A stretch of DNA of 64,000 bases from Auanema rhodensis. Taxonomy: Eukaryota > Animalia > Nematoda. Location of the stretch: the NCBI GenBank assembly GCA_964057225.1, contig OZ059898.1, positions 19,840,001-19,904,000 on the forward strand. Reading direction: 5' to 3'. The notes under the pieces are model-generated. The model was not told the origin of the DNA and did no database searches. It was given only the letters and a program-made list of their open reading frames with translations. Shown here piece by piece: positions 1 through 64,000 of this stretch (the stretch's first letter is position 1; each line of letters starts with the position of its first letter). Made by a program: the position numbers and the translations under genes.

Positions 1-17
1 GCACCGAGATATCAACT

Positions 18-39
18 GATATAAGTTCACACTTATATC
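18..39. other. Perfect 9-bp inverted repeat with 4-nt loop inside the 351-bp monomer (first copy given)
   Basis: GATATAAGT-tcac-ACTTATATC; the arms are exact reverse complements and are present in nearly every monomer. Confidence 0.9.
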
Positions 40-300
40 CTCGATTTTCACCCTGAAGAATTAATTTTTTCGTTGAATAACATTGTCCATCGTCTTTGCC
101 TTGAAAAAAGAAATCTAAAAACATTTACTTTTTGCTAAATTATTTTGAAATTTTTTGAAAAAATTTTTGTCAAAATGTTTTTGGAAGCAAGGTTGAGTGT
201 ACATGGAAACTCAACATACACTAATGCATTATTTTTCAAACGATCATAACTAATTTTTGTATTAAGCGTTTTTCAATGTAGTATAGTGCACTCGATGCGG

Positions 301-351
301 ATTTTTAAGCTGCGTCGATCTGTGTTATCAGATTTGCGCTAGCTTAAAAAT
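301..351. other. 51-bp imperfect inverted repeat inside the 351-bp monomer (first copy given)
   Basis: ATTTTTAAGCT-gcg-tcg-ATCTG-tgttat-CAGAT-ttg-cgc-t-AGCTTAAAAAT: 11-bp perfect outer stem, 5-bp perfect inner stem. Confidence 0.9.
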
Positions 352-12300: not shown

Positions 12301-12987
12301 CTGATATAAGTTCACACTTATATCCTCGATTTTCACCCTGAAGAATTAATTTTTTCGTTGAATAACATTGTCCATCGTCTTTGCCTTGTAAAAAGGAATC
12401 TAAAAACATCTACTTTTTGCTAAATTATTCTGAAATTTTTCGAAAAAATTTTTGTCAAAATGTTTTTGGAAGCAAGGTTGAGTGTACTTGGAAACTCAAC
12501 ATACACTAATGCATTATTTTTCAAACGATCATAACTAATTTTTGTATTAAGCGTTTCTCAATGTAGTATAGTGCATTCGATGCGGATTTTTAAGCTGCGT
12601 CGATCTGTGTTATCAGATTTGCGCTAGCTTAAAAATGCACCGAGATATCAACTGATATAAGTTCACACTTATATCCTCGATTTTCACCCTGAAGAATTAA
12701 TTTTTTCGTTGAATAACATTGTCCATCGTCTTTGCCTTGTAAAAAGGAATCTAAAAACATTTACTTTTTGCTAAATTATTCTGAAATTTTTCGAAAAAAT
12801 TTTTGTCAAAATGTTTTTGGAAGCAAGGTTGAGTGTACTTGGAAACTCAACATACACTAATGCATTATTTTTCAAACGATCATAACTAATTTTTGTATTA
12901 AGCGTTTCTCAATGTAGTATAGTGCATTCGATGCGGATTTTTAAGCTGCGTCGATCTGTGTTATCAGATTTGCGCTAGCTTAAAAAT

Positions 12988-17199: not shown

Positions 17200-20100
17200 G
17201 CACCGAGATATCAACTGATATAAGTTCACACTTATATCCTCGATTTTCACCCTGAAGAATTAATTTTTTCGTTGAATAACATTGTCCATCGTCTTTGCCT
17301 TGTAAAAAGGAATCTAAAAACATCTACTTTTTGCTAAATTATTCTGAAATTTTTCGAAAAAATTTTTGTCAAAATGTTTTTGGAAGCAAGGTTGAGTGTA
17401 CTTGGAAACTCAACATACACTAATGCATTATTTTTCAAACGATCATAACTAATTTTTGTATTAAGCGTTTCTCAATGTAGTATAGTGCATTCGATGCGGA
17501 TTTTTAAGCTGCGTCGATCTGTGTTATCAGATTTGCGCTAGCTTAAAAATGCACCGAGATATCAACTGATATAAGTTCACACTTATATCCTCGATTTTCA
17601 CCCTGAAGAATTAATTTTTTCGTTGAATAACATTGTCCATCGTCTTTGCCTTGTAAAAAGGAATCTAAAAACATTTACTTTTTGCTAAATTATTCTGAAA
17701 TTTTTCGAAAAAATTTTTGTCAAAATGTTTTTGGAAGCAAGGTTGAGTGTACTTGGAAACTCAACATACACTAATGCATTATTTTTCAAACGATCATAAC
17801 TAATTTTTGTATTAAGCGTTTCTCAATGTAGTATAGTGCATTCGATGCGGATTTTTAAGCTGCGTCGATCTGTGTTATCAGATTTGCGCTAGCTTAAAAA
17901 TGCACCGAGATATCAACTGATATAAGTTCACACTTATATCCTCGATTTTCACCCTGAAGAATTAATTTTTTCGTTGAATAACATTGTCCATCGTCTTTGC
18001 CTTGAAAAAAGGAATCTAAAAACATCTACTTTTTGCTAAATTATTTTGAAATTTTTCGAAAAAATTTTTGTCAAAATGTTTTTGGAAGCAAGGTTGAGTG
18101 TACATGGAAACTCAACATACACTAATGCATTATTTTTCAAACGATCATAACTAATTTTTGTATTAAGCGTTTCTCAATGTAGTATAGTGCATTCGATGCG
18201 GATTTTTAAGCTGCGTCGATCTGTGTTATCAGATTTGCGCTAGCTTAAAAATGCACCGAGATATCAACTGATATAAGTTCACACTTATATCCTCGATTTT
18301 CACCCTGAAGAATTAATTTTTTCGTTGAATAACATTGTCCATCGTCTTTGCCTTGAAAAAAGGAATCTAAAAACATTTACTTTTTGCTAAATTATTTTGA
18401 AATTTTTTGAAAAAATTTTTGTCAAAATGTTTTTGGAAGCAAGGTTGAGTGTACATGGAAACTCAACATACACTAATGCATTATTTTTCAAACGATCATA
18501 ACTAATTTTTGTATTAAGCGTTTTTCAATGTAGTATAGTGCACTCGATGCGGATTTTTAAGCTGCGTCGATCTGTGTTATCAGATTTGCGCTAGCTTAAA
18601 AATGCACCGAGATATCAACTGATATAAGTTCACACTTATATCCTCGATTTTCACCCTGAAGAATTAATTTTTTCGTTGAATAACATTGTCCATCGTCTTT
18701 GCCTTGAAAAAAGGAATCTAAAAACATCTACTTTTTGCTAAATTATTTTGAAATTTTTCGAAAAAATTTTTGTCAAAATGTTTTTGGAAGCAAGGTTGAG
18801 TGTACATGGAAACTCAACATAAACTAATGCATCATTTTTCAAACGATCATAACTAATTTTTGTATTAAGCGTTTTTCAATGTAATATAGTGCATTCGATG
18901 CGGATTTTTAAGCTGCGTCGATCTGTGTTATCGGATTTTCGCTAGCTTAAAAATGCACCGAGATATCAACTGATATAAGTTCACACTTATATCCTCGATT
19001 TTCACCCTGAAAAATTAATTTTTTCGTTGAATAACATTGTCCATCGTCTTTGCCTTGAAAAAAGGAATCTAAAAACATCTACTTTTTGCTAAATTATTTT
19101 GAAATTTTTCGAAAAAATTTTTGTCAAAATGTTTTTGGAAGCAAGGTTGAGTGTACATGGAAACTCAACATACACTAATGCATTATTTTTCAAACGATCA
19201 TAACTAATTTTTGTATTAAGCGTTTCTCAATGTAGTATAGTGCATTCGATGCGGATTTTCAAGCTGCGTCGATCTGTGTTATCAGATTTGCGCTAGCTTA
19301 AAAATGCACCGAGATATCAACTGATATAAGTTCACACTTATATCCTCAATTTTCACCCTGAAGAATTAATTTTTTCGTTGAATAACATTGTCCATCGTCT
19401 TTGCTTTGAAAAAAGGAATCTAAAAACATCTACTTTTTGCTAAATTATTTTGAAATTTTTCGAAAAAATTTTTGTCAAAATGTTTTTGGAAGCAATATTG
19501 AGTGTACATGGAAACTCAACATACACTAATGCATTATTTTTCAAACGATCATAACTAATTTTTGTATTAAGCGTTTCTCAATGTAGTAAAGTGCATTCGA
19601 TGCGGATTTGTAAGCTGCGTCGATCTGTGTTATCAGATTTGCGCTAGCTTAAAAATGCACCGAGATATCAACTGATATAAGTTCACACTTATATCCTTGA
19701 TTTTCACCCTGAAGAATTAATTTTTTCGTTGAATAACATTGTCCATCGTCTTTGCCTTGAAAAAAGGAATCTAAAAACATTTACTTTTTGCTAAATTATT
19801 TTGAAATTTTTCGAAAAAATTTTTGTCAAAATGTTTTTGGAAGCAATGTTGAGTGTACATGGAAACTCAACATACACTAATGCATCATTTTTCAAACGAT
19901 CATAACTAATTTTTGTATCGAAGATTTCTCACTGTAATATAGTGCTTTTGATGCGGATTTTTAAGCTGCGTCGATCTGTGTTATCAGATTTGCCCTTGCT
20001 TAAAAATGCACCGAGAAATCAACTGATATAAGTTCACACTTATATCCTCGATTTTCACCCTGAAGAATTAATTTTTTCGTTGAATAACATTGTCCATCGT

Positions 20101-22797
20101 CTTTGCCTTAAAAAAAGAATTCAAAAACATCTACTTTTTGTGCAATTATTCTAAAATTTTTCGGGAAAATTTTTGTCAAAATGTTTTTGGAAGCAATGTT
20201 GAGTGTACATGGAAACTCAAAATACACTAATGCATCATTTTTCAAACGATCATAACTAATTTTTGTATCAAGCGTTTCTCAATGTAGTATAGTGCATTCG
20301 ATGCGGATTTTTAAGCTGCGTCGATCTGTGTTATCAGATTTGCGCTAGCTTAAAAATGCACCGAGATATCAACTGATATAAGTTCACACTTATATCCTCG
20401 CTTTTCACCCTGAAGAATTAATTTTTTCGTTGAATAACATTGTCCATCGTTTTTGCCATGAAAAAAGGAATCTAAAAACAGCTACTTTTTGCTAAATTAT
20501 TTTGAAATTTTTCGAAAAAATTTTTGTCAAAATGTTTTTGGAAGCAATGTTGAGTGTACATGGAAACTCAACATACACTAATGCATCATTTTTCAAACGA
20601 TCATAACTAATTTTTGTATCAAGCGTTTCTCAATGTAGTATAGTGCATTCGATGCGGATTTTTAAGCTTATCAGATTTGCGCTAGCTTAAAAATGCACCG
20701 AGATATCAACTGATATAAGTTCACACTTATATCCTCGATTTTCACCCTGAAGAATTAATTTTTTCGTTGAATAACATTGTCCATCGTCTTTGCCTTGAAA
20801 AAAGAATTTAAAAACATCTACTTTTCGTGCAATTATTCTAAAATTTTTCGGGAAAATTTTTGTCAAAATGTTTTTGAAGCAATGTTGAGTGTACATGGAA
20901 ACTCAACATACACTAATGCATCCTTTTTCAAACGATCATAACTAATTTCTGTAGTGGGCATTTTTCAATGTAGTATAGTGCTTTCGATGCGGATTTTTAA
21001 GCTGCGTCGATCTGTGTTATCAGATTTGCGCTAGCTTAAAAATGCACCGAGATATCAACTGATATAAGTTCACACTTATATCCTCGATTTTCACCCTGAA
21101 GAATTAATTTTTTCGTTGAATAACATAGTTCATCGTCTTTGCCTTAAAAAAAGAATTTAAAAACATCTACTTTTTGTGCAATTATTTTAAAATTTTTCGG
21201 GAAAATTTTTGTCAAAATGTTTTTGGAAGCAAGGTTGAGTGTACATGGAAACTCAACATACACTAATGCATTATTTTTCAAACGATCATAACTAATTTTT
21301 GTATTAAGCGTTTCTCAATGTAGTATAGTGCATTCGATGCGGATTTTTAAGCTGCGTCGATCTGTGTTATCAGATTTGCGCTAGCTTAAAAATGCACCGA
21401 GATATCAACTGATATAAGTTCACACTTATATCCTCGATTTTCACCCTGAAGAATTAATTTTTTCGTTGAATAACATTGTCCATCGTCTTTGCCTTGAAAA
21501 AAGGAATCTAAAAACATCTACTTTTTGCTAAATTATTTTGAAATTTTTCGAAAAAATTTTTGTCAAAATGTTTTTGGAAGCAAGGTTGAGTGTACATGGA
21601 AACTCAACATACACTAATGCATTATTTTTCAAACGATCATAACTAATTTTTGTATTAAGCGTTTCTCAATGTAGTATAGTGCATTCGATGCGGATTTTTA
21701 AGCTGCGTCGATCTGTGTTATCAGATTTGCGCTAGCTTAAAAATGCACCGAGATATCAACTGATATAAGTTCACACTTATATCCTCGATTTTCACCCTGA
21801 AGAATTAATTTTTTCGTTGAATAACATTGTCCATCGTCTTTGCCTTGAAAAAAGGAATCTAAAAACATTTACTTTTTGCTAAATTATTTTGAAATTTTTT
21901 GAAAAAATTTTTGTCAAAATGTTTTTGGAAGCAAGGTTGAGTGTACATGGAAACTCAACATACACTAATGCATTATTTTTCAAACGATCATAACTAATTT
22001 TTGTATTAAGCGTTTTTCAATGTAGTATAGTGCACTCGATGCGGATTTTTAAGCTGCGTCGATCTGTGTTATCAGATTTGCGCTAGCTTAAAAATGCACC
22101 GAGATATCAACTGATATAAGTTCACACTTATATCCTCGATTTTCACCCTGAAGAATTAATTTTTTCGTTGAATAACATTGTCCATCGTCTTTGCCTTGAA
22201 AAAAGGAATCTAAAAACATCTACTTTTTGCTAAATTATTTTGAAATTTTTCGAAAAAATTTTTGTCAAAATGTTTTTGGAAGCAAGGTTGAGTGTACATG
22301 GAAACTCAACATAAACTAATGCATCATTTTTCAAACGATCATAACTAATTTTTGTATTAAGCGTTTTTCAATGTAATATAGTGCATTCGATGCGGATTTT
22401 TAAGCTGCGTCGATCTGTGTTATCGGATTTTCGCTAGCTTAAAAATGCACCGAGATATCAACTGATATAAGTTCACACTTATATCCTCGATTTTCACCCT
22501 GAAAAATTAATTTTTTCGTTGAATAACATTGTCCATCGTCTTTGCCTTGAAAAAAGGAATCTAAAAACATCTACTTTTTGCTAAATTATTTTGAAATTTT
22601 TCGAAAAAATTTTTGTCAAAATGTTTTTGGAAGCAAGGTTGAGTGTACATGGAAACTCAACATACACTAATGCATTATTTTTCAAACGATCATAACTAAT
22701 TTTTGTATTAAGCGTTTCTCAATGTAGTATAGTGCATTCGATGCGGATTTTCAAGCTGCGTCGATCTGTGTTATCAGATTTGCGCTAGCTTAAAAAT

Positions 22798-42600: not shown

Positions 42601-44957
42601 TCATTATTGCTTTGTTAGCTTTAAAATTTTTGCTACTACATGTCCTGTGTTTACTGCACTAGCTGGTTTTCACTTTTTATGAGATTTTTCATCATCTTAC
42701 AACAAATTCATTTAAATCTAACATGAATTATTTTCTCGTTTTAAAAAGCATTGAATTTCATTGTTTCTTGTAATATTGGATTTGATTACTGCTTCTTTAG
42801 CTTTAAAATTTTTGCTACTACATGTCTTGTGTTTACTGCTCTAGCTGGTTTTCACTTTTTATGAGATTTTTCATCATCTTACAACAAATTCATTTAAATC
42901 TAACATGAATTATTTTCTCGTTTTAAAAAGCATTGAATTTCATTGTTTCTTGTAATATTGGATTTGATTATTGCTTCGTTTGTTTTAAGATTTTGCTTCT
43001 GCATGTCCTGTGTTTACTGCTCTAGCTGGTTTTCACTTTTTATGAGATTTTTCATCATCTTACAAGAAATTCAATTGAATCTAACATGAATTATTTTTTC
43101 GTTTGAAAAAGCATTGAATTTCATTGTTTCTTGTAATATTGGATTTGATTATTGCTTTGTTAGCTTTAAAATTTTTGCTACTACATGTCCTGTGTTTACT
43201 GCTCTAGCTGGTTTTCACTTTTTATGAGATTTTTCATCATCTTACAACAAATTCATTTAAATCTAACATGAATTGTTTTTTCGTTTTGAAAAGCATTGAA
43301 TTTCATTGTTTCTGGTAATATTTGATTTGATTATTGCTTCGTTTGTTTTAAGATTTTGCTTCTGCATGTCCTGTGTTTACTGCTCTAGCTGGTTTTCACT
43401 TTTTATGAGATTTTTCATCATCTTACAACAAATTCATTTAAATCTAACATGAATTACTTTTTCGTTTTAAAAAGCATTGAATTTCATTGTTTCTTGTAAT
43501 ATTGGATTTGATTATTGCTTCGTTTGTTTTAAGATTTTGCTTCTGCATAGCTTCAGTGCTCTAGCTGGTTTTCACTTTTTATGAGATTTTTCATCATCTT
43601 ACAACAAATTCATTTAAATCTAACATGAATTATTTTTTCGTTTTAAAAAGCATTGAATTTCATTGTTTCTTGTAATATTGGATTTGATTATTGCTTCGTT
43701 TGTTTTAAGATTTTGCTTCTGCATGTCCTGTGTTTACTGCTCTAGCTGGTTTTCACTTTTTATGAGATTTTTCATCATCTTACAACAAATTCATTTAAAT
43801 CTAACATGAATTACTTTTTCGTTTTAAAAAGCATTGAATTTCATTGTTTCTTGTAATATTGGATTTGATTATTGCTTCGTTTGTTTTAAGATTTTGCTTC
43901 TGCATAGCTTCAGTGCTCTAGCTGGTTTTCACTTTTTATGAGATTTTTCATCATCTTACAACAAATTCATTTAAATCTAACATGAATTACTTTTTCGTTT
44001 TAAAAAGCATTGAATTTCATTGTTTCTGGTAATATTGGATTTGATTATTGCTTCGTTTGTTTTAAGATTTTGCTTCTGCATGTCCTGTGTTTACTGCTCT
44101 AGCTGGTTTTCACTTTTTATGAGATTTTTCATCATCTTACAACAAATTCATTTAAATCTAACATGAATTACTTTTTCGTTTTAAAAAGCATTGAATTTCA
44201 TTGTTTCTTGTAATATTGGATTTGATTATTGCTTCGTTTGTTTTAAGATTTTGCTTCTGCATAGCTTCAGTGCTCTAGCTGGTTTTCACTTTTTATGAGA
44301 TTTTTCATCATCTTACAACAAATTCATTTAAATCTAACATGAATTATTTTTTCGTTTTAAAAAGCATTGAATTTCATTGTTTCTTGTAATATTGGATTTG
44401 ATTATTGCTTCGTTTGTTTTAAGATTTTGCTTCTGCATGTCCTGTGTTTACTGCTCTAGCTGGTTTTCACTTTTTATGAGATTTTTCATCATCTTACAAC
44501 AAATTCATTTAAATCTAACATGAATTATTTTTTCGTTTTAAAAAGCATTGAATTTCATTGTTTCTTGTAATATTGGATTTGATTATTGCTTCGTTTGTTT
44601 TAAGATTTTGCTTCTGCATGTCCTGTGTTTACTGCTCTAGCTGGTTTTCACTTTTTATGAGATTTTTCATCATCTTACAACAAATTCATTTAAATCTAAC
44701 ATGAATTATTTTTTCGTTTTAAAAAGCATTGAATTTCATTGTTTCTTGTAATATTGGATTTCATTATTGCTTTGTTAGCTTTAAAATTTTTGCTACTACA
44801 TGTCCTGTGTTTACTGCACTAGCTGGTTTTCACTTTTTATGAGATTTTTCATCATCTTACAACAAATTCATTTAAATCTAACATGAATTATTTTCTCGTT
44901 TTAAAAAGCATTGAATTTCATTGTTTCTTGTAATATTGGATTTGATTATTGCTTCGT
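39624..44957 (+). repeat. ~180-bp tandem satellite array, forward orientation (29 full monomers + partial; 176/181/182-bp subtypes)
   Basis: Marker TTATGAGATTTTTCATCATCTTAC recurs at 39624, 39805, 39981, 40157, 40339, 40515, 40697 ... 44655, 44837. Subtype tags: GCATAGCTTCAGTGCTC (176), GCATGTCCTGTGTTTACTGCTC (181), GTTAGCTT...TTTTTGCTACTACATG (182). Confidence 0.98.
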
Positions 44958-44991
44958 ATTGCTTTGTTCATTTCTCTTATTTTTATTACTA
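44958..44991. other. Pivot/spacer of the large inversion: ~11-nt local re-copy of satellite plus ~23 nt not matching either monomer
   Basis: The forward monomer stops at TATTGCTTCGT (44957). It is followed by ATTGCTTTGTT (as in the 182-bp subtype), then CATTTCTCTTATTTTTATTACTA. The reverse-strand monomer starts at TTTGAAACGAAAAAATAGTTCAT. Boundaries are uncertain by a few nt. Confidence 0.85.
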
Positions 44992-47900
44992 TTTGAAACG
45001 AAAAAATAGTTCATATTAGATTCAAATGAATTTGTTGCAAGATGATGAAAAATCTCATAAAAATGGAAAACCAGCTGGAGCACTGAAGCTATGCAGAAGC
45101 AAAATCTTAAAACAAACGAAGCAATAATCAAATCCAATATTACAAGAAACAATGAAATTCAATGCTTTTTCAAACGAAAAAATAATTCATGTTAGATTCA
45201 ATTGAATTTCTTGTAAGATGATGAAAAATCTCATAAAAAGTGAAAACCAGCTAGAGCAGTAAACACAGGACATGCAGAAGCAAAATCTTAAAACAAACGA
45301 AGCAATAATCAAATCCAATATTACAAGAAACAATGAAATTCAATGCTTTTCAAAACGAAAAAACAATTCATGTTAGATTTAAATGAATTTGTTGTAAGAT
45401 GATGAAAAATCTCATAAAAAGTGAAAACCAGCTAGAGCACTGAAGCTATGCAGAAGCAAAATCTTAAAACAAACGAAGCAATAATCAAATCCAATATTAC
45501 AAGAAACAATGAAATTCAATGCTTTTTAAAACGAAAAAATAATTCATGTTAGATTTAAATGAATTTGTTGTAAGATGATGAAAAATCTCATAAAAAGTGA
45601 AAACCAGCTAGAGCAGTAAACACAGGACATGCAGAAGCAAAATCTTAAAACAAACGAAGCAATAATCAAATCCAATATTACAAGAAACAATGAAATTCAA
45701 TGCTTTTTAAAACGAAAAAATAATTCATGTTAGATTTAAATGAATTTGTTGTAAGATGATGAAAAATCTCATAAAAAGTGAAAACCAGCTAGAGCACTGA
45801 AGCTATGCAGAAGCAAAATCTTAAAACAAACGAAGCAATAATCAAATCCAATATTACAAGAAACAATGAAATTCAATGCTTTTTAAAACGAAAAAGTAAT
45901 TCATGTTAGATTTAAATGAATTTGTTGTAAGATGATGAAAAATCTCATAAAAAGTGAAAACCAGCTAGAGCAGTAAACACAGGACATGCAGAAGCAAAAT
46001 CTTAAAACAAACGAAGCAATAATCAAATCCAATATTACAAGAAACAATGAAATTCAATGCTTTTTAAAACGAAAAAATAATTCATGTTAGATTTAAATGA
46101 ATTTGTTGTAAGATGATGAAAAATCTCATAAAAAGTGAAAACCAGCTAGAGCACTGAAGCTATGCAGAAGCAAAATCTTAAAACAAACGAAGCAATAATC
46201 AAATCCAATATTACAAGAAACAATGAAATTCAATGCTTTTTAAAACGAAAAAGTAATTCATGTTAGATTTAAATGAATTTGTTGTAAGATGATGAAAAAT
46301 CTCATAAAAAGTGAAAACCAGCTAGAGCAGTAAACACAGGACATGCAGAAGCAAAATCTTAAAACAAACGAAGCAATAATCAAATCCAATATTACCAGAA
46401 ACAATGAAATTCAATGCTTTTCAAAACGAAAAAACAATTCATGTTAGATTTAAATGAATTTGTTGTAAGATGATGAAAAATCTCATAAAAAGTGAAAACC
46501 AGCTAGAGCAGTAAACACAGGACATGTAGTAGCAAAAATTTTAAAGCTAACAAAGCAATAATCAAATCCAATATTACAAGAAACAATGAAATTCAATGCT
46601 TTTTCAAACGAAAAAATAATTCATGTTAGATTCAATTGAATTTCTTGTAAGATGATGAAAAATCTCATAAAAAGTGAAAACCAGCTAGAGCAGTAAACAC
46701 AGGACATGCAGAAGCAAAATCTTAAAACAAACGAAGCAATAATCAAATCCAATATTACAAGAAACAATGAAATTCAATGCTTTTCAAAACGAAAAAACAA
46801 TTCATGTTAGATTTAAATGAATTTGTTGTAAGATGATGAAAAATCTCATAAAAAGTGAAAACCAGCTAGAGCACTGAAGCTATGCAGAAGCAAAATCTTA
46901 AAACAAACGAAGCAATAATCAAATCCAATATTACAAGAAACAATGAAATTCAATGCTTTTTAAAACGAAAAAGTAATTCATGTTAGATTTAAATGAATTT
47001 GTTGTAAGATGATGAAAAATCTCATAAAAAGTGAAAACCAGCTAGAGCAGTAAACACAGGACATGCAGAAGCAAAATCTTAAAACAAACGAAGCAATAAT
47101 CAAATCCAATATTACCAGAAACAATGAAATTCAATGCTTTTTAAAACGAAAAAATAATTCATGTTAGATTTAAATGAATTTGTTGTAAGATGATGAAAAA
47201 TCTCATAAAAAGTGAAAACCAGCTAGAGCACTGAAGCTATGCAGAAGCAAAATCTTAAAACAAACGAAGCAATAATCAAATCCAATATTACAAGAAACAA
47301 TGAAATTCAATGCTTTTTAAAACGAAAAAGTAATTCATGTTAGATTTAAATGAATTTGTTGTAAGATGATGAAAAATCTCATAAAAAGTGAAAACCAGCT
47401 AGAGCAGTAAACACAGGACATGCAGAAGCAAAATCTTAAAACAAACGAAGCAATAATCAAATCAAATATTACCAGAAACAATGAAATTCAATGCTTTTCA
47501 AAACGAAAAAACAATTCATGTTAGATTTAAATGAATTTGTTGTAAGATGATGAAAAATCTCATAAAAAGTGAAAACCAGCTAGAGCAGTAAACACAGGAC
47601 ATGTAGTAGCAAAAATTTTAAAGCTAACAAAGCAATAATCAAATCCAATATTACAAGAAACAATGAAATTCAATGCTTTTTCAAACGAAAAAATAATTCA
47701 TGTTAGATTCAATTGAATTTCTTGTAAGATGATGAAAAATCTCATAAAAAGTGAAAACCAGCTAGAGCAGTAAACACAGGACATGCAGAAGCAAAATCTT
47801 AAAACAAACGAAGCAATAATCAAATCCAATATTACAAGAAACAATGAAATTCAATGCTTTTTAAAACGAAAAAATAATTCATGTTAGATTTAAATGAATT

Positions 47901-49887
47901 TGTTGTAAGATGATGAAAAATCTCATAAAAAGTGAAAACCAGCTAGAGCACTGAAGCTATGCAGAAGCAAAATCTTAAAACAAACGAAGCAATAATCAAA
48001 TCCAATATTACAAGAAACAATGAAATTCAATGCTTTTTAAAACGAAAAAGTAATTCATGTTAGATTTAAATGAATTTGTTGTAAGATGATGAAAAATCTC
48101 ATAAAAAGTGAAAACCAGCTAGAGCAGTAAACACAGGACATGCAGAAGCAAAATCTTATAACAAACGAAGCAATAATCAAATCCAATATTACCAGAAACA
48201 ATTAAATTCAATGCTTTTCAAAACGAAAAAACAATTCATGTTAGATTTAAATGAATTTGTTGTAAGATGATGAAAAATCTCATAAAAAGTGAAAACCAGC
48301 TAGAGCAGTAAACACAGGACATGCAGAAGCAAAATCTTAAAACAAACGAAGCAATAATCAAATCCAATATTACAAAAAACAATGAAATTCAATGCTTTTT
48401 CAAACGAAAAAATAATTCATGTTAGATTCAATTGAATTTCTTGTAAGATGATGAAAAATCTCATAAAAAGTGAAAACCAGCTAGAGCAGTAAACACAGGA
48501 CATGCAGAAGCAAAATCTTATAACAAACGAAGCAATAATCAAATCCAATATTACCAGAAACAATTAAATTCAATGCTTTTCAAAACGAAAAAACAATTCA
48601 TGTTAGATTTAAATGAATTTGTTGTAAGATGATGAAAAATCTCATAAAAAGTGAAAACCAGCTAGAGCAGTAAACACAGGACATGTAGTAGCAAAAATTT
48701 TAAAGCTAACAAAGCAATAATCAAATCCAATATTACAAGAAACAATGAAATTCAATGCTTTTTCAAACGAAAAAATAATTCATGTTAGATTCAATTGAAT
48801 TTCTTGTAAGATGATGAAAAATCTCATAAAAAGTGAAAACCAGCTAGAGCAGTAAACACAGGACATGCAGAAGCAAAATCTTAAAACAAACGAAGCAATA
48901 ATCAAATCCAATATTACAAGAAACAATGAAATTCAATGCTTTTTAAAACGAAAAAATAATTCATGTTAGATTTAAATGAATTTGTTATAAGATGATGAAA
49001 AATCTCATAAAGAGTGAAAACCAGCTAGAGCAGTAAACACAGAAAATGTAGTAGCACAAATTTTAAAGCTAACAAAGCAATAATCAAATCCAATATTACA
49101 AGAAACAATGAAATTCAATGTTTTTTAAAACAAAAAAATAATTCATGTTAGATTTAAATGAATTTGTTGTAAGATGATGAAAAATCTCATAAAAAGTGAA
49201 AACCAGCTAGAGCACTGAAGCTATGCAGAAGCAAAATCTTGAAACAAACGAAGCAATAATCAAATCCAATATTACAAGAAACAATGAAATTCAATGCTTT
49301 TTAAAACGAAAAAATAATTCATGTTAGATTTAAATGAATTTGTTGTAAGATGATGAAAAATCTCATAAAAAGTGAAAACCAGCTAGAGCAGTAAACACAG
49401 GACATGCAGAAGCAAAATCTTAAAACAAACGAAGCAATAATCAAATCCAATATTACAAGAAACAATGAAATTCAATGCTTTTTAAAACGAAAAAATAATT
49501 CATGTTAGATTTAAATGAATTTGTTATAAGATGATGAAAAATCTCATAAAGAGTGAAAACCAGCTAGAGCAGTAAACACAGAAAATGTAGTAGCACAAAT
49601 TTTAAAGCTAACAAAGCAATAATCAAATCCAATATTACAAGAAACAATGAAATTCAATGTTTTTTAAAACGAAAAAATAATTCATGTTAGATTTAAATGA
49701 ATTTGTTGTAAGATGATGAAAAATCTCATAAAAAGTGAAAACCAGCTAGAGCACTGAAGCTATGCAGAAGCAAAATCTTGAAACAAACGAAGCAATAATC
49801 AAATCCAATATTACAAGAAACAATGAAATTCAATGCTTTTTAAAACGAAAAAATAATTCATGTTAGATTTAAATGAATTTGTTGTAA
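44992..49887 (-). repeat. ~180-bp tandem satellite array, inverted orientation (~27 monomers)
   Basis: Reverse complement of the preceding family (GTAAGATGATGAAAAATCTCATAA, CTGAAGCTATGCAG, GTAAACACAGGACATG) with the same three length subtypes; ends at ...GAATTTGTTGTAA (49887). Confidence 0.98.
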
Positions 49888-52800
49888 CATGTACACTCAA
49901 CATTGCTTCCAAAAACATTTTGACAAAAATTTTTTCGAAAAATTTCAAAATAATTTCGCAAAAAGTAAATGTTTTTAGATTTCTTTTTTCAAGGCAAAGA
50001 CGATGGACAATGTTATTCAACGAAAAAATTAATTCTTCAGGGTGAAAATCGAGGATATAAGTTTGAACTTATATCAGTTGATATCTCGGTGCATTTTTAA
50101 GCTACCGCAAATCTGATAACACAGATCGACGCAGCTTAAAAATCCGCATCGAATACACTATACTACATTGAGAAACGCTTGATACAAAAATTAGTTATGA
50201 TCGTTTGAAAAATGATGCATTAGTGTATGTTGAGTTTCCATGTACACTCAACATTGCTTCCAAAAACATTTTGACAAAAATTTTTCCGAAAAATTTGAAA
50301 ATAATTTAGCAAAAAGTAGATGTTTTTAGATTTCTTTTTTCAAGGCAAAGACGATGGACGATGTTATTCAACAAAAAAATTAATTCTTCAGGGTGAAAAT
50401 CGAGGATATAAGTGTGAACTTATATCAGTTGATATCTCGGTGCATTTTTAAGCTAGCGCAAATCTGATAACACAGATCGACGCAGCTTAAAAATCCGCAT
50501 CGAATGCACTATACTACATTGAGAAACGCTTGATACAAAAATTAGTTATGATCGTTTGAAAATGATGCATTAGTGTATTTTGAGTTTCCATGTACACTCA
50601 ACATTGCTTCCAAAACATTTTGACAAAAATTTTTTCGAAAAATTTCAAAATAATTTAGTAAAAAGTAGATGTTTTTAGATTTCTTTTTTCAAGGCAAAGA
50701 CGATGGACGATGTTATTCAACAAAAAAATTATATCTTCAGGGTGAAAATCGAGGATATAAGTGTGAACTTATATCAGTTGATATCTCGGTGCATTTTTAA
50801 GCTACCGCAAATCTGATAACACAGATCGACGCAGCTTAAAAATCCGCATCGAATGCACTATACTACATTGAGAAACGCTTGATACAAAAATTAGTTATGA
50901 TCGTTTGAAAAATGATGCATTAGTGTATGTTGAGTTTCCATGTACACTCAACATTGCTTCCAAAAACATTTTGACAAAAATTTTTCCGAAAAATTTCAAA
51001 ATAATTTAGCAAAAAGTAGATGTTTTTAGATTTCTTTTTTCAAGGCAAAGACGATGGACGATGTTATTCAACAAAAAAATTAATTCTTCAGGGTGAAAAT
51101 CGAGGATATAAGTGTGAACTTATATCAGTTGATATCTCGGTGCATTTAAAAGCTAGCGCAAATCTGATAACACAGATCGACGCAGCTTAAAAATCCGCAT
51201 CGAATACACTATACTACATTGAGAAACGCTTGATACAAAAATTAGTTATGATCGTTTGAAAAATGATGCATTAGTGTATGTTGAGTTTCCATGTACACTC
51301 AACATTGCTTCCAAAAACATTTTGACAAAAATTTTTCCGAAAAATTTCAAAATAATTTAGCAAAAAGTAGATGTTTTTAGATTTCTTTTTTCAAGGCAAA
51401 GACGATGGACGATGTTATTCAACAAAAAAATTAATTCTTCAGGGTGAAAATCGAGGATATAAGTGTGAACTTATATCAGTTGATATCTCGGTGCATTTTT
51501 AAGCTAGCGCAAATCTGATAACACAGATCGACGCAGCTTAAAAATCCGCATCGAATGCACTATACTACATTGAGAAACGCTTGATACAAAAATTAGTTAT
51601 GATCGTTTGAAAATGATGCATTAGTGTATTTTGAGTTTCCATGTACACTCAACATTGCTTCCAAAACATTTTGACAAAAATTTTTTCGAAAAATTTCAAA
51701 ATAATTTAGCGAAAAGTAGCTGTTTTTAGATTCCTTTTTTCAAGGCAAAAACGATGGACAATGTTATTCAACAAAAAAATTATATCTTCAGGGTGAAAAT
51801 CGAGGATATAAGTGTGAACTTATATCAGTTGATATCTCGGTGCATTTTTAAGCTACCGCAAATCTGATAACACAGATCGACGCAGCTTAAAAATCCGCAT
51901 CGAATACACTATACTACATTGAGAAACGCTTGATACAAAAATTAGTTATGATCGTTTGAAAAATGATGCATTAGTGTATGTTGAGTTTCCATGTACACTC
52001 AACATTGCTTCCAAAAACATTTTGACAAAAATTTTTCCGAAAAATTTCGAAATAATTTAGCAAAAAGTAGATGTTTTTAGATTTCTTTTTTCAAGGCAAA
52101 GACGATGGACGATGTTATTCAACAAAAAAATTAATTCTTCAGGGTGAAAATCGAGGATATAAGTGTGAACTTATATCAGTTGATATCTCGGTGCATTTAA
52201 AAGCTAGCGCAAATCTGATAACACAGATCGACGCAGCTTAAAAATCCGCATCGAATGCACTATACTACATTGAGAAACGCTTGATACAAAAATTAGTTAT
52301 GATCGTTTGAAAATGATGCATTAGTGTATTTTGAGTTTCCATGTACACTCAACATTGCTTCCAAAACATTTTGACAAAAATTTTTTCGAAAAATTTCAAA
52401 ATAATTTAGTAAAAAGTAGCTGTTTTTAGATTCCTTTTTTCAAGGCAAAAACGATGGACAATGTTATTCAACAAAAAAATTAATTCTTCAGGGTGAAAAT
52501 CGAGGATATAAGTGTGAACTTATATCAGTTGATATCTCGGTGCATTTTTAAGCTAGCGCAAATCTGATAACACAGATCGACGCAGCTTAAAAATCCGCAT
52601 CGAATGCACTATACTACATTGAGAAACGCTTGATACAAAAATTAGTTATGATCGTTTGAAAATGATGCATTAGTGTATTTTGAGTTTCCATGTACACTCA
52701 ACATTGCTTCCAAAACATTTTGACAAAAATTTTTTCGAAAAATTTCAAAATAATTTAGCGAAAAGTAGCTGTTTTTAGATTCCTTTTTTCAAGGCAAAAA

Positions 52801-55800
52801 CGATGGACAATGTTATTCAACAAAAAAATTATATCTTCAGGGTGAAAATCGAGGATATAAGTGTGAACTTATATCAGTTGATATCTCGGTGCATTTTTAA
52901 GCTACCGCAAATCTGATAACACAGATCGACGCAGCTTAAAAATCCGCATCGAATACACTATACTACATTGAGAAACGCTTGATACAAAAATTAGTTATGA
53001 TCGTTTGAAAATGATGCATTAGTGTATTTTGAGTTTCCATGTACACTCAACATTGCTTCCAAAACATTTTGACAAAAATTTTTTCGAAAAATTTCAAAAT
53101 AATTTAGTAAAAAGTAGCTGTTTTTAGATTCCTTTTTTCAAGGCAAAAACGATGGACAATGTTATTCAACAAAAAAATTATATCTTCAGGGTGAAAATCG
53201 AGGATATAAGTGTGAACTTATATCAGTTGATATCTCGGTGCATTTTTAAGCTACCGCAAATCTGATAACACAGATCGACGCAGCTTAAAAATCCGCATCG
53301 AATACACTATACTACATTGAGAAACGCTTGATACAAAAATTAGTTATGATCGTTTGAAAAATGATGCATTAGTGTATGTTGAGTTTCCATGTACACTCAA
53401 CATTGCTTCCAAAAACATTTTGACAAAAATTTTTCCGAAAAATTTCAAAATAATTTAGCAAAAAGTAGATGTTTTTAGATTTCTTTTTTCAAGGCAAAGA
53501 CGATGGACGATGTTATTCAACAAAAAAATTAATTCTTCAGGGGGAAAATCGAGGATATAAGTGTGAACTTATATCAGTTGATATCTCGGTGCATTTAAAA
53601 GCTAGCGCAAATCTGATAACACAGATCGACGCAGCTTAAAAATCCGCATCGAATGCACTATACTACATTGAGAAACGCTTGATACAAAAATTAGTTATGA
53701 TCGTTTGAAAATGATGCATTAGTGTATTTTGAGTTTCCATGTACACTCAACATTGCTTCCAAAACATTTTGACAAAAATTTTTTCGAAAAATTTCAAAAT
53801 AATTTAGTAAAAAGTAGCTGTTTTTAGATTCCTTTTTTCAAGGCAAAAACGATGGACAATGTTATTCAACAAAAAAATTAATTCTTCAGGGTGAAAATCG
53901 AGGATATAAGTGTGAACTTATATCAGTTGATATCTCGGTGCATTTCAAAGCTAGCGCAAATCTGATAACACAGATCGACGCAGCTTAAAAATCCGCATCG
54001 AATGCACTATACTACATTGAGAAACGCTTGATACACAAATTAGTTATGATCGTTTGAAAAATGATGCATTAGTGTATTTTGAGTTTCCATGTACACTCAA
54101 CATTGCTTCCAAAAACATTTTGACAAAAATTTTTCCGAAAAATTTCAAAATAATTTCGCAAAAAGTAGATGTTTTTAGATTTTTTTTTTCAAGGCAAAGA
54201 CGATGGACAAGGTTATTCAACGAAAAAATTGATTCTTCAGGGTGAAAATCGAGGATATAAGTGTGAACTTATATCAGTTGATATCTCGGTGCATTTTTCA
54301 GCTAGCGCAAATCTGATAACACAGATCGACGCAGCTTAAAAATCCGCATCGAATGCACTATACTACATTGAGAAACGCTTGATACAAAAATTAGTTATGA
54401 TCGTTTGAAAAATGATGCATTAGTGTATTTTGAGTTTCCATGTACACTCAACATTGCTTCCAAAAACATTTTGACAAAAATTTTTCCGAAAAATTTCAAA
54501 ATAATTTCGCAAAAAGTAGATGTTTTTAGATTTTTTTTTTCAAGGCAAAGACGATGGACAAGGTTATTCAACGAAAAAATTAATTCTTCAGGGTGAAAAT
54601 CGAGGATATAAGTGTGAACTTATATCAGTTGATATCTCGGTGCATTTTTAAGCTAGCGCAAATCTGATAACACAGATCGACGCAGCTTAAAAATCCGCAT
54701 CGAGTGCACTATACTACATTGAGAAACGCTTAATACAAAAATTAGTTATGATCGTTTGAAAAATGATGCATTAGTGTATTTTGAGTTTCCATGTACACTC
54801 AACATTGCTTCCAAAACATTTTGACAAAAATTTTTTCGAAAAATTTCAAAATAATTTAGCGAAAAGTAGCTGTTTTTAGATTCCTTTTTTCAAAGCAAAA
54901 ACGATGGACAATGTTATTCAACAAAAAAATTATATCTTCAGGGTGAAAATCGAGGATATAAGTGTGAACTTATATCAGTTGATATCTCGGTGCATTTTTA
55001 AGCTACCGCAAATCTGATAACACAGATCGACGCAGCTTAAAAATCCGCATCGAATACACTATACTACATTGAGAAACGCTTGATACAAAAATTAGTTATG
55101 ATCGTTTGAAAAATGATGCATTAGTGTATGTTGAGTTTCCATGTACACTCAACATTGCTTCCAAAAACATTTTGACAAAAATTTTTCCGAAAAATTTCAA
55201 AATAATTTAGCAAAAAGTAGATGTTTTTAGATTTCTTTTTTCAAGGCAAAGACGATGGACGATGTTATTCAACAAAAAAATTAATTCTTCAGGGGGAAAA
55301 TCGAGGATATAAGTGTGAACTTATATCAGTTGATATCTCGGTGCATTTAAAAGCTAGCGCAAATCTGATAACACAGATCGACGCAGCTTAAAAATCCGCA
55401 TCGAATGCACTATACTACATTGAGAAACGCTTGATACAAAAATTAGTTATGATCGTTTGAAAATGATGCATTAGTGTATTTTGAGTTTCCATGTACACTC
55501 AACATTGCTTCCAAAACATTTTGACAAAAATTTTTTCGAAAAATTTCAAAATAATTTAGTAAAAAGTAGCTGTTTTTAGATTCCTTTTTTCAAGGCAAAA
55601 ACGATGGACAATGTTATTCAACAAAAAAATTAATTCTTCAGGGTGAAAATCGAGGATATAAGTGTGAACTTATATCAGTTGATATCTCGGTGCATTTCAA
55701 AGCTAGCGCAAATCTGATAACACAGATCGACGCAGCTTAAAAATCCGCATCGAATGCACTATACTACATTGAGAAACGCTTGATACAAAAATTAGTTATG

Positions 55801-58800
55801 ATCGTTTGAAAAATGATGCATTAGTGTATTTTGAGTTTCCATGTACACTCAACATTGCTTCCAAAAACATTTTGACAAAAATTTTTCCGAAAAATTTCAA
55901 AATAATTTCGCAAAAAGTAGATGTTTTTAGATTTTTTTTTTCAAGGCAAAGACGATGGACAATGTTATTCAACGAAAAAATTAATTCTTCAGGGTGAAAA
56001 TCGAGGATATAAGTGTGAACTTATATCAGTTGATATCTCGGTGCATTTTTAAGCTAGCGCAAATCTGATAACACAGATCGACGCAGCTTAAAAATCCGCA
56101 TCGAGTGCACTATACTACATTGAGAAACGCTTGATACAAAAATTAGTTATGATCGTTTGAAAAATGATGCATTAGTGTATTTTGAGTTTCCATGTACATT
56201 CAACATTGCTTCCAAAAACATTTTGACAAAAATTTTTCCGAAAAATTTCAAAATAATTTCGCAAAAAGTAGATGTTTTTAGATTTTTTTTTTCAAGGCAA
56301 AGACGATGGACAAGGTTATTCAACGAAAAAATTGATTCTTCAGGGTGAAAATCGAGGATATAAGTGTGAACTTATATCAGTTGATATCTCGGTGCATTTT
56401 TCAGCTAGCGCAAATCTGATAACACAGATCGACGCAGCTTAAAAATCCGCATCGAATGCACTATACTACATTGAGAAACGCTTGATACAAAAATTAGTTA
56501 TGATCGTTTGAAAAATGATGCATTAGTGTATTTTGAGTTTCCATGTACACTCAACATTGCTTCCAAAAACATTTTGACAAAAATTTTTCCGAAAAATTTC
56601 AAAATAATTTCGCAAAAAGTAGATGTTTTTAGATTTTTTTTTTCAAGGCAAAGACGATGGACAAGGTTATTCAACGAAAAAATTAATTCTTCAGGGTGAA
56701 AATCGAGGATATAAGTGTGAACTTATATCAGTTGATATCTCGGTGCATTTTTAAGCTAGCGCAAATCTGATAACACAGATCGACGCAGCTTAAAAATCCG
56801 CATCGAGTGCACTATACTACATTGAGAAACGCTTAATACAAAAATTAGTTATGATCGTTTGAAAAATGATGCATTAGTGTATTTTGAGTTTCCATGTACA
56901 CTCAACATTGCTTCCAAAAACATTTTGACAAAAATTTTTCCGAAAAATTTCAAAATAATTTCGCAAAAAGTAGATGTTTTTAGATTTTTTTTTTCAAGGC
57001 AAAGACGATGGACAAGGTTATTCAACGAAAAAATTAATTCTTCAGGGTGAAAATCGAGGATATAAGTGTGAACTTATATCAGTTGATATCTCGGTGCATT
57101 TTTAAGCTAGCGCAAATCTGATAACACAGATCGACGCAGCTTAAAAATCCGCATCGAGTGCACTATACTACATTGAGAAACGCTTGATACAAAAATTAGT
57201 TATGATTGTTTGAAAAATGATGCATTAGTGTATTTTGAGTTTCCATGTACACTCAACATTGCTTCCAAAACATTTTGACAAAAATTTTTTCGAAAAATTT
57301 CAAAATAATTTAGCAAAAAGTAGCTGTTTTTAGATTCCTTTTTTCAAGGCAAAAACGATGGACAATGTTATTCAACGAAAAAATTAATTCTTCAGGGTGA
57401 AAATCGAGGATATAAGTGTGAACTTATATCAGTTGATATCTCGGTGCATTTTTAAGCTAGCGCAAATCTGATAACACAGATCGACGCAGCTTAAAAATCC
57501 GCATCGAATGCACTATACTACATTGAGAAACGCTTGATACAAAAATTAGTTATGATCGTTTGAAAAATGATGCATTAGTGTATTTTGAGTTTCCATGTAC
57601 ACTCAACATTGCTTCCAAAAACATTTTGACAAAAATTTTTCCGAAAAATTTCAAAATAATTTCGCAAAAAGTAGATGGTTTTAGATTTTTTTTTTCAAGG
57701 CAAAGACGATGGACAAGGTTATTCAACGAAAAAATTAATTCTTCAGGGTGAAAATCGAGGATATAAGTGTGAACTTATATCAGTTGATATCTCGGTGCAT
57801 TTTCAAGCTAGCGCAAATCTAATAACACAGATCGACGCAGCTTAAAAATCCGCATCGAATGCACTATACTAAATTGAGAAACGCTTGATACAAAAATTAG
57901 TTATGACCGTTTGAAAAATGATGCATTAGTGTATTTTGAGTTTCCATGTACACTCAACATTGCTTCCAAAAACATTTTGACAAAAATTTTTTCGAAAAAT
58001 TTCAGAATAATTTCGCAAAAAGTAAATGTTTTTAGATTTCTTTTTTCAAGGCAAAGACGATGGACAATGTTATTCAACGAAAAAATTAATTCTTCAGGGT
58101 GAAAATCGAGGATATAAGTGTGAACTTATATCAGTTGATATCTCGGTGCATTTTTAAGCTAGCGCAAATCTGATAACACAGATCGACGCAGCTTAAAAAT
58201 CCGCATCGAGTGCACTATACTACATTGAGAAACGCTTGATACAAAAATTAGTTATGATCGTTTGAAAAATGATGCATTAGTGTATTTTGAGTTTCCATGT
58301 ACATTCAACATTGCTTCCAAAAACATTTTGACAAAAATTTTTCCGAAAAATTTCAAAATAATTTCGCAAAAAGTAGATGTTTTTAGATTTTTTTTTTCAA
58401 GGCAAAGACGATGGACAAGGTTATTCAACGAAAAAATTGATTCTTCAGGGTGAAAATCGAGGATATAAGTGTGAACTTATATCAGTTGATATCTCGGTGC
58501 ATTTTTCAGCTAGCGCAAATCTGATAACACAGATCGACGCAGCTTAAAAATCCGCATCGAATGCACTATACTACATTGAGAAACGCTTGATACAAAAATT
58601 AGTTATGATCGTTTGAAAAATGATGCATTAGTGTATTTTGAGTTTCCATGTACACTCAACATTGCTTCCAAAAACATTTTGACAAAAAGTTTTCCGAAAA
58701 ATTTCAAAATAATTTCGCAAAAAGTAGATGTTTAGAAATTTTTTTTCAAGGCAAAGACGATGGACAATGTTATTCAACGAAAAAATTAATTCTTCAGGGT

Positions 58801-61800
58801 GAAAATCGAGGATATAAGTGTGAACTTATATCAGTTGATATCTCGGTGCATTTTTAAGCTAGCGCAAATCTGATAACACAGATCGACGCAGCTTAAAAAT
58901 CCGCATCGAGTGCACTATACTACATTGAGAAACGCTTGATACAAAAATTAGTTATGATCGTTTGAAAAATGATGCATTAGTGTATTTTGAGTTTCCATGT
59001 ACATTCAACATTGCTTCCAAAAACATTTTGACAAAAATTTTTCCGAAAAATTTCAAAATAATTTCGCAAAAAGTAGATGTTTTTAGATTTTTTTTTTCAA
59101 GGCAAAGACGATGGACAAGGTTATTCAACGAAAAAATTGATTCTTCAGGGTGAAAATCGAGGATATAAGTGTGAACTTATATCAGTTGATATCTCGGTGC
59201 ATTTTTCAGCTAGCGCAAATCTGATAACACAGATCGACGCAGCTTAAAAATCCGCATCGAATGCACTATACTACATTGAGAAACGCTTGATACAAAAATT
59301 AGTTATGATTGTTTGAAAAATGATGCATTAGTGTATTTTGAGTTTCCATGTACACTCAACATTGCTTCCAAAACATTTTGACAAAAATTTTTTCGAAAAA
59401 TTTCAAAATAATTTAGCAAAAAGTAGCTGTTTTTAGATTCCTTTTTTCAAGGCAAAAACGATGGACAATGTTATTCAACGAAAAAATTAATTCTTCAGGG
59501 TGAAAATCGAGGATATAAGTGTGAACTTATATCAGTTGATATCTCGGTGCATTTTTAAGCTAGCGCAAATCTGATAACACAGATCGACGCAGCTTAAAAA
59601 TCCGCATCGAATGCACTATACTACATTGAGAAACGCTTGATACAAAAATTAGTTATGATCGTTTGAAAAATGATGCATTAGTGTATTTTGAGTTTCCATG
59701 TACACTCAACATTGCTTCCAAAAACATTTTGACAAAAATTTTTCCGAAAAATTTCAAAATAATTTCGCAAAAAGTAGATGGTTTTAGATTTTTTTTTTCA
59801 AGGCAAAGACGATGGACAAGGTTATTCAACGAAAAAATTAATTCTTCAGGGTGAAAATCGAGGATATAAGTGTGAACTTATATCAGTTGATATCTCGGTG
59901 CATTTTCAAGCTAGCGCAAATCTAATAACACAGATCGACGCAGCTTAAAAATCCGCATCGAATGCACTATACTAAATGGAGAAACGCTTGATACAAAAAT
60001 TAGTTATGACCGTTTGAAAAATGATGCATTAGTGTATTTTGAGTTTCCATGTACACTCAACATTGCTTCCAAAAACATTTTGACAAAAATTTTTTCGAAA
60101 AATTTCAGAATAATTTCGCAAAAAGTAAATGTTTTTAGATTTCTTTTTTCAAGGCAAAGACGATGGACAATGTTATTCAACGAAAAAATTAATTCTTCAG
60201 GGTGAAAATCGAGGATATAAGTGTGAACTTATATCAGTTGATATCTCGGTGCATTTTTAAGCTAGCGCAAATCTGATAACACAGATCGACGCAGCTTAAA
60301 AATCCGCATCGAGTGCACTATACTACATTGAGAAACGCTTGATACAAAAATTAGTTATGATCGTTTGAAAAATGATGCATTAGTGTATTTTGAGTTTCCA
60401 TGTACATTCAACATTGCTTCCAAAAACATTTTGACAAAAATTTTTCCGAAAAATTTCAAAATAATTTCGCAAAAAGTAGATGTTTTTAGATTTTTTTTTT
60501 CAAGGCAAAGACGATGGACAAGGTTATTCAACGAAAAAATTGATTCTTCAGGGTGAAAATCGAGGATATAAGTGTGAACTTATATCAGTTGATATCTCGG
60601 TGCATTTTTCAGCTAGCGCAAATCTGATAACACAGATCGACGCAGCTTAAAAATCCGCATCGAATGCACTATACTACATTGAGAAACGCTTGATACAAAA
60701 ATTAGTTATGATCGTTTGAAAAATGATGCATTAGTGTATTTTGAGTTTCCATGTACACTCAACATTGCTTCCAAAAACATTTTGACAAAAATTTTTCCGA
60801 AAAATTTCAAAATAATTTCGCAAAAAGTAGATGGTTTTAGATTTTTTTTTTCAAGGCAAAGACGATGGACAAGGTTATTCAACGAAAAAATTAATTCTTC
60901 AGGGTGAAAATCGAGGATATAAGTGTGAACTTATATCAGTTGATATCTCGGTGCATTTTCAAGCTAGCGCAAATCTAATAACACAGATCGACGCAGCTTA
61001 AAAATCCGCATCGAATGCACTATACTAAATTGAGAAACGCTTGATACAAAAATTAGTTATGACCGTTTGAAAAATGATGCATTAGTGTATTTTGAGTTTC
61101 CATGTACACTCAACATTGCTTCCAAAAACATTTTGACAAAAATTTTTTCGAAAAATTTCAGAATAATTTCGCAAAAAGTAAATGTTTTTAGATTTCTTTT
61201 TTCAAGGCAAAGACGATGGACAATGTTATTCAACGAAAAAATTAATTCTTCAGGGTGAAAATCGAGGATATAAGTGTGAACTTATATCAGTTGATATCTC
61301 GGTGCATTTTTAAGCTAGCGCAAATCTGATAACACAGATCGACGCAGCTTAAAAATCCGCATCGAGTGCACTATACTACATTGAGAAACGCTTGATACAA
61401 AAATTAGTTATGATCGTTTGAAAAATGATGCATTAGTGTATTTTGAGTTTCCATGTACATTCAACATTGCTTCCAAAAACATTTTGACAAAAATTTTTCC
61501 GAAAAATTTCAAAATAATTTCGCAAAAAGTAGATGTTTTTAGATTTTTTTTTTCAAGGCAAAGACGATGGACAAGGTTATTCAACGAAAAAATTGATTCT
61601 TCAGGGTGAAAATCGAGGATATAAGTGTGAACTTATATCAGTTGATATCTCGGTGCATTTTTCAGCTAGCGCAAATCTGATAACACAGATCGACGCAGCT
61701 TAAAAATCCGCATCGAATGCACTATACTACATTGAGAAACGCTTGATACAAAAATTAGTTATGATCGTTTGAAAAATGATGCATTAGTGTATTTTGAGTT

Positions 61801-64000
61801 TCCATGTACACTCAACATTGCTTCCAAAAACATTTTGACAAAAATTTTTCCGAAAAATTTCAAAATAATTTCGCAAAAAGTAGATGTTTAAAAATTTTTT
61901 TTCAAGGCAAAGACGATGGACAATGTTATTCAACGAAAAAATTAATTCTTCAGGGTGAAAATCGAGGATATAAGTGTGAACTTATATCAGTTGATATCTC
62001 GGTGCATTTTTAAGCTAGCGCAAATCTGATAACACAGATCGACGCAGCTTAAAAATCCGCATCGAGTGCACTATACTACATTGAGAAACGCTTGATACAA
62101 AAATTAGTTATGATCGTTTGAAAAATGATGCATTAGTGTATTTTGAGTTTCCATGTACATTCAACATTGCTTCCAAAAACATTTTGACAAAAATTTTTCC
62201 GAAAAATTTCAAAATAATTTCGCAAAAAGTAGATGTTTTTAGATTTTTTTTTTCAAGGCAAAGACGATGGACAAGGTTATTCAACGAAAAAATTGATTCT
62301 TCAGGGTGAAAATCGAGGATATAAGTGTGAACTTATATCAGTTGATATCTCGGTGCATTTTTCAGCTAGCGCAAATCTGATAACACAGATCGACGCAGCT
62401 TAAAAATCCGCATCGAATGCACTATACTACATTGAGAAACGCTTGATACAAAAATTAGTTATGATTGTTTGAAAAATGATGCATTAGTGTATTTTGAGTT
62501 TCCATGTACACTCAACATTGCTTCCAAAACATTTTGACAAAAATTTTTTCGAAAAATTTCAAAATAATTTAGCAAAAAGTAGCTGTTTTTAGATTCCTTT
62601 TTTCAAGGCAAAAACGATGGACAATGTTATTCAACGAAAAAATTAATTCTTCAGGGTGAAAATCGAGGATATAAGTGTGAACTTATATCAGTTGATATCT
62701 CGGTGCATTTTTAAGCTAGCGCAAATCTGATAACACAGATCGACGCAGCTTAAAAATCCGCATCGAGTGCACTATACTACATTGAGAAACGCTTGATACA
62801 AAAATTAGTTATGATCGTTTGAAAAATGATGCATTAGTGTATTTTGAGTTTCCATGTACATTCAACATTGCTTCCAAAAACATTTTGACAAAAATTTTTC
62901 CGAAAAATTTCAAAATAATTTCGCAAAAAGTAGATGTTTTTAGATTTTTTTTTTCAAGGCAAAGACGATGGACAAGGTTATTCAACGAAAAAATTGATTC
63001 TTCAGGGTGAAAATCGAGGATATAAGTGTGAACTTATATCAGTTGATATCTCGGTGCATTTTTCAGCTAGCGCAAATCTGATAACACAGATCGACGCAGC
63101 TTAAAAATCCGCATCGAATGCACTATACTACATTGAGAAACGCTTGATACAAAAATTAGTTATGATCGTTTGAAAAATGATGCATTAGTGTATTTTGAGT
63201 TTCCATGTACACTCAACATTGCTTCCAAAAACATTTTGACAAAAATTTTTCCGAAAAATTTCAAAATAATTTCGCAAAAAGTAGATGTTTAAAAATTTTT
63301 TTTCAAGGCAAAGACGATGGACAATGTTATTCAACGAAAAAATTAATTCTTCAGGGTGAAAATCGAGGATATAAGTGTGAACTTATATCAGTTGATATCT
63401 CGGTGCATTTTTAAGCTAGCGCAAATCTGATAACACAGATCGACGCAGCTTAAAAATCCGCATCGAGTGCACTATACTACATTGAGAAACGCTTGATACA
63501 AAAATTAGTTATGATCGTTTGAAAAATGATGCATTAGTGTATTTTGAGTTTCCATGTACATTCAACATTGCTTCCAAAAACATTTTGACAAAAATTTTTC
63601 CGAAAAATTTCAAAATAATTTCGCAAAAAGTAGATGTTTTTAGATTTTTTTTTTCAAGGCAAAGACGATGGACAAGGTTATTCAACGAAAAAATTGATTC
63701 TTCAGGGTGAAAATCGAGGATATAAGTGTGAACTTATATCAGTTGATATCTCGGTGCATTTTTCAGCTAGCGCAAATCTGATAACACAGATCGACGCAGC
63801 TTAAAAATCCGCATCGAATGCACTATACTACATTGAGAAACGCTTGATACAAAAATTAGTTATGATTGTTTGAAAAATGATGCATTAGTGTATTTTGAGT
63901 TTCCATGTACACTCAACATTGCTTCCAAAACATTTTGACAAAAATTTTTTCGAAAAATTTCAAAATAATTTAGCAAAAAGTAGCTGTTTTTAGATTCCTT
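49888..64000 (-). repeat. 351-bp tandem satellite array, inverted orientation (~40 monomers of 349-351 bp; open at right window edge)
   Basis: Reverse complement of the first family (CAGTTGATATCTCGGTGC, GATATAAGTGTGAACTTATATC); starts at CATGTACACTCAAC (49888). The 351-bp spacing of the repeated pseudo-ORFs (e.g. 54054/54405, 56157/56508/56859) confirms the period. Confidence 0.99.

Follow-up and report, generated by a model that had tools for sequence, protein, structure and literature searches.

A strand-switching 181-bp satellite island inside an inverted 351-bp satellite array: probable scar of an old fold-back or end-joining event

The window, that is the whole stretch of 64,000 nucleotides analyzed here, consists wholly of satellite DNA (G+C = 30.6%). 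Within it, an array of a ~181-bp minor satellite with an internal strand switch sits inside a 351-bp major satellite, which changes strand together with it. We propose, with moderate confidence, that an old inversion in a minor-satellite island, produced by fold-back or end joining, was later remodelled by satellite turnover and has persisted as a neutral scar.

Monomer BLAST and TRF placed the 351-bp unit on the plus strand at 1-39625 (114 matches) and on the minus strand at 49888-64000 (41 matches). Between these arrays, the 176/181/182-bp unit gave 30 plus-strand matches (39627-44965) and 28 minus-strand matches (44989-49891), and 44966-44988 is the sole stretch of the window with no monomer match. 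The inner (181) arms measure 5.34 and 4.90 kb, the outer (351) arms at least 39.6 and at least 14.1 kb, and the AT skew turns from -0.32 to +0.33 across the pivot. The features of the window are:

1-39625, plus strand: 351-bp satellite, left arm, ~113 units, bulk haplotype 105G/144T (TRF, monomer BLAST)
36522-39625, plus strand: older diverged 351 layer (337/349/350-bp variants) adjoining junction 1, with right-arm alleles and further copies at ~19.7-31.9 kb
39613-39636, plus strand: junction 1, 351 position ~330 to 181 position ~-2, once in the window
39626-44956, plus strand: ~181-bp minor satellite, left arm, 30 units (176/181/182-bp subtypes)
42918-44619, plus strand: 1.7-kb left-arm tract tiled by four exact inverted right-arm copies (753, 318, 355 and 273 bp)
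44909-44988, no strand: unpaired pivot loop of 80 nt, made of 48 nt of left monomer and a 32-nt insert (44957-44988)
44989-49891, minus strand: ~181-bp minor satellite, right arm, 28 units, with diverged monomers beside the pivot
49879-49900, minus strand: junction 2, 351 position ~120 to 181 position ~18, once in the window
49888-64000, minus strand: 351-bp satellite, right arm, ~40 units, a haplotype lineage unlike the left bulk

The initial annotation described both families as flipping strand in mirror order around an axis near 44975, and our coordinates (axis ~44975) and arm lengths match this description. Its term macro-palindrome holds for the order and strand of the families, but not for their sequence, in which both the junctions and the monomers differ between the two sides. 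The structure is a dyad of families and no true palindrome.

The same-strand alignment of the 351 and 181 units scores 99.6, which was reached in 0/500 dinucleotide shuffles and 1-5/400 block shuffles, and the opposite-strand score lies at background. Judged by this alignment, the two families are distant homologues, with a weak but significant similarity. At both junctions they are joined in the homologous sense, on the same strand. Unit lengths of ~181 and 351 bp (about 2 x 175) come close to the lengths of one and two nucleosome repeats. A test for two ~175-bp halves within the 351 unit, as expected of a dimer, gave no significance (68/100 shuffles). An Rfam search of 38-52 kb and ARAGORN found nothing, the 181-unit pattern had no match among metagenome contigs, and an exact look-up of three spurious ORFs, one of them across junction 2, matched no contig.

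At the pivot, the left 181 arm ends at monomer position 117 (44956) and the right arm starts at position 69 (44989), and 62/69 nt agree around the 80-nt loop. The first 12 nt of the insert are identical to a 182-type monomer 192 bp upstream (match at 44765), a match reached in 6/1000 shuffles (p about 0.006). The last 20 nt are unique and untemplated. With its short asymmetric spacer and partly flank-templated insert, the pivot resembles a fold-back or end-joining (TMEJ-type) junction. In C. elegans, templated insertions and inverted duplications occur at damaged chromosome ends, and junctions with a templated insert are ascribed to polymerase theta (PMC8034613). Our pivot shares with these fold-back or template-switch scars the strand switch, the short asymmetric loop, the partly flank-templated insert and the little microhomology; in contrast to them, its arms are no longer exact inverted duplicates, as may be the case for an old event overwritten by satellite turnover.

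The monomers at the inversion point are degenerate, with six variants in 69 nt of monomer R45057. The right pivot-adjacent monomer R45233 carries 175C/176A, and because this pair is found elsewhere only in three outer-left monomers, it suggests that both 181 arms began as one array. We also considered a Rhabditid Sequence For Elimination (SFE) site, a 29-nt palindrome with telomere addition, at the pivot. No palindrome with arms of at least 5 was found at 44880-45020 and no TTAGGC telomere repeat in the window, so the pivot is not an elimination site.

An assembly artefact, namely a fold-back read or a mis-join, would be easier to produce in a window that is all repeat, with a germline coverage of only ~29x. 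However, fold-back artefacts give exact mirrors, whereas this pivot agrees at 62/69 nt around a novel 20-nt insert, both junctions are unique, and the haplotype layering is smooth. A 10-kb island is probably within HiFi read length. We regard an artefact as very improbable.

The two transition zones are distinct and contain no extrinsic sequence. Junction 1 has an overlap of at most a few AT-rich bases, and junction 2 shows an imperfect 3-nt microhomology and misses the homologous register of the two families by ~10 bp. By arithmetic, one ~230-bp deletion suffices to derive junction 2 from junction 1. The cuts of the two junctions in the 181 unit lie no more than ~20 bp apart, for which arithmetic gives a chance of ~0.2; alone, this is no evidence.

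In the 181 arms, monomers at mirror positions have 10.0 differences, versus 9.1 for random left/right pairs. Not one 351 monomer is common to both arms (minimum 4 differences left versus right), the 105G/144T haplotype occurs in 67-69/114 left versus 0/41 right monomers, and the longest exact inverted match between the 351 arms is 235 bp, versus 2798 bp inside the left arm. The left and right 351 arrays belong to separate lineages. A recent exact inverted duplication by fold-back, for which near-exact mirror arms are expected, is rejected by these comparisons. For the inverted-duplication or fold-back origin put forward in the initial annotation, the anatomy of the pivot fits, but the arms are no inverted duplicate in sequence. 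Because the arms are not mirror copies now, a single fold-back is something that we infer rather than see, which counts against our reading.

The 351 monomers beside junction 1 carry 2-5 right-arm alleles each, and those of the first 19 kb carry none. These alleles common to both arms could be ancestral states of the family, a second point against our reading. In a tree, the 351 monomers cluster by arm, a pattern that does not give the order of events. The edge layer is old and was amplified anew into a higher-order repeat of irregular form. A block of some 5-7 diverged 351 units by junction 1 (35820-39625) recurs several times deeper in the left arm (19392-31959). The diverged block includes a 337-bp unit with a 14-bp deletion, and one example of the copying is an exact 1884-bp match between 19349 and 36128.

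A simple inversion with its breakpoints in two separate direct 181 islands, in which the arms were never duplicates of each other, would account for the differing junctions and 351 lineages without later remodelling. But it requires both breaks to fall in a rare minor family, and a single array is suggested by the left-type variants that flank the pivot on either side. We consider such an inversion distinctly unlikely.

The 1.7-kb tract in the left 181 arm holds nine monomers that are separated from right-arm ones by 0-1 differences; no other left monomer is identical to a right-arm one. A 332-bp exact direct duplicate flanks the tract (42457-42788 = 44617-44948). The tract suggests that the inverted 181 arms recently underwent conversion or unequal exchange with each other. 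The window records such an exchange at base level, a route by which arrays on opposite strands can be kept homogeneous.

On the basis of these observations, we suggest the following history. The ancestral state would have been 351>181>, with the 181 unit as a distant relative of the 351 unit in the same sense. A break or fork stall within the 181 island may then have left an end that was rejoined by folding back or by end joining, with a short templated insert, by a polymerase-theta or template-switch type of repair, giving 351>181> on one side of the pivot and <181<351 on the other. This would have happened long ago; unequal exchange would afterwards have replaced most monomers, in each arm separately, a small deletion would have re-cut at least one junction, and the ~1.7-kb tract would have passed by copying between the two inverted 181 arms. 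The setting may have been a germline-restricted repeat block of the nematode Auanema rhodense, under weak selection, on holocentric chromosomes that tolerate fusions.

This setting is drawn from studies of nematodes. A preprint on A. rhodense reports that elimination removes ~61% of the genome from somatic cells, chiefly in the form of tandem-repeat blocks, that these blocks are common to all autosome ends, and that the build-up of repeats is a by-product of weak selection (bioRxiv 10.64898/2026.08.27.747507). The window resembles the AT-1/AT-2 terminal repeats of A. rhodense, being >99% satellite and AT-rich, with unit sizes within the reported 167-504 nt. None of the four published A. rhodense FISH probes matches in the window, and the best match of the AT-1 probe has 12 mismatches of 28; by the criterion of this probe, the 181-bp unit is a repeat other than AT-1. 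The text of the preprint mentions neither switches in satellite orientation nor a minor family of this kind (bioRxiv 10.64898/2026.08.27.747507).

As those of a nematode, the host chromosomes are probably holocentric. CENP-A in C. elegans is independent of repeats, fused holocentric chromosomes segregate normally, and the eliminated DNA of Ascaris loses CENP-A (PMC9071541). If the host is a nematode that removes its terminal repeat blocks from somatic cells, the centromeric (CenH3) framing of the initial annotation is unlikely.

The structure might instead be functional and kept by selection, as a hairpin or cruciform, a chromatin boundary, or a landmark for germline pairing or segregation. 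As single-stranded DNA, the pivot folds strongly (-75.5 kcal/mol, z -12), which is trivial for any inverted repeat, and the inter-arm tract indicates that the arms do interact. On the other hand, the pivot monomers are the most decayed, neither an SFE palindrome nor a telomere repeat is present, and the nematode centromere findings above point away from such a role. An 80-nt AT-rich loop and a 10% mismatch at the pivot disfavour cruciform extrusion. Nothing in the window supports the cruciform or the chromatin-boundary module that had been suggested for it, and we think that selection for function is a most doubtful explanation.

The closest published architecture is that of beetles of the genus Tribolium. 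T. freemani has a TfSat03 intercalary cassette in TfSat01, a minor-satellite dyad within a major satellite (PMC12581902), and T. madens has a TmSat2 cassette in TmSat1, whose two transition zones differ and whose major and minor units are related (PMC13081366). These cassettes are (peri)centromeric and occur in thousands of copies, with pivots that are degenerate yet 97-99% conserved (PMC12581902, PMC13081366), and the T. madens paper states that Tribolium is the only genus in which macro-dyads were documented, and suggests that they have a role at centromeres (PMC13081366). The organized-cassette architecture is already published for Tribolium (PMC12581902, PMC13081366).

Measured against these accounts, the window shares with Tribolium a kilobase-scale dyad of a minor satellite in a major satellite and degenerate monomers at the inversion point, and with T. 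madens also the two non-mirror transition zones and the common origin of the major and minor units. However, the island is 10.3 kb here versus ~2-4 kb there, one copy is analyzed here versus thousands there, and the host DNA is probably the germline-restricted part of a holocentric nematode's genome. If the host is A. rhodense, a (peri)centromeric position on monocentric chromosomes is unlikely. The Tribolium monomer sizes that we compared (225/704, 166/1106, 360 and ~110 bp) show no match to 351/181. By anatomy, the window looks like one cassette of the Tribolium type; with one copy compared, we do not file it as a member.

These likenesses bear on another explanation, an amplified cassette. 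One unit running from junction 1 through the two opposed 181 arms to junction 2 would have been copied between chromosome ends by ectopic exchange, as in Tribolium, and would now mark several polarity switches, with or without a function. The T. madens-like anatomy (two different transition zones, degenerate pivot, related units) agrees with such copying, as does the sharing of terminal repeats by all autosome ends of A. rhodense. We judge it unlikely. Similarly unlikely is a fuller claim, in which the 181 dyad recurs as a cassette at several autosome ends, its pivot conserved, in the soma-absent DNA of a holocentric nematode, having evolved convergently and without a somatic centromere role. 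If this were true, the dyad would be the first cassette of the Tribolium type known from outside that genus, and the notion that centromeres are defined by macro-dyads could be put to a direct test.

If the genome is that of A. rhodense, the nested layout occurs in repeat DNA discarded from the soma, in a lineage with dispersed centromeres. In that case ordinary break repair and satellite turnover can build the architecture, so that arguments from structure to function are weakened. The window may be useful chiefly as a control outside centromeres, against which the Tribolium hypothesis could be checked.

We also notice several minor features of the arrays. Across 39626-49891, the 181, 176 (5-bp deletion) and 182 (~8 linked changes) subtypes of the minor unit alternate and give rise to local 357-bp dimers. 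At 27969-29500, the 351-bp monomers are perfectly identical (1209-bp exact match, period 351), which points to an amplification that was local and very recent. Separate higher-order periods of 1401, 2103 and 3156 bp mark the right 351 arm at 54000-64000, with a change of haplotype near 54.2 kb.
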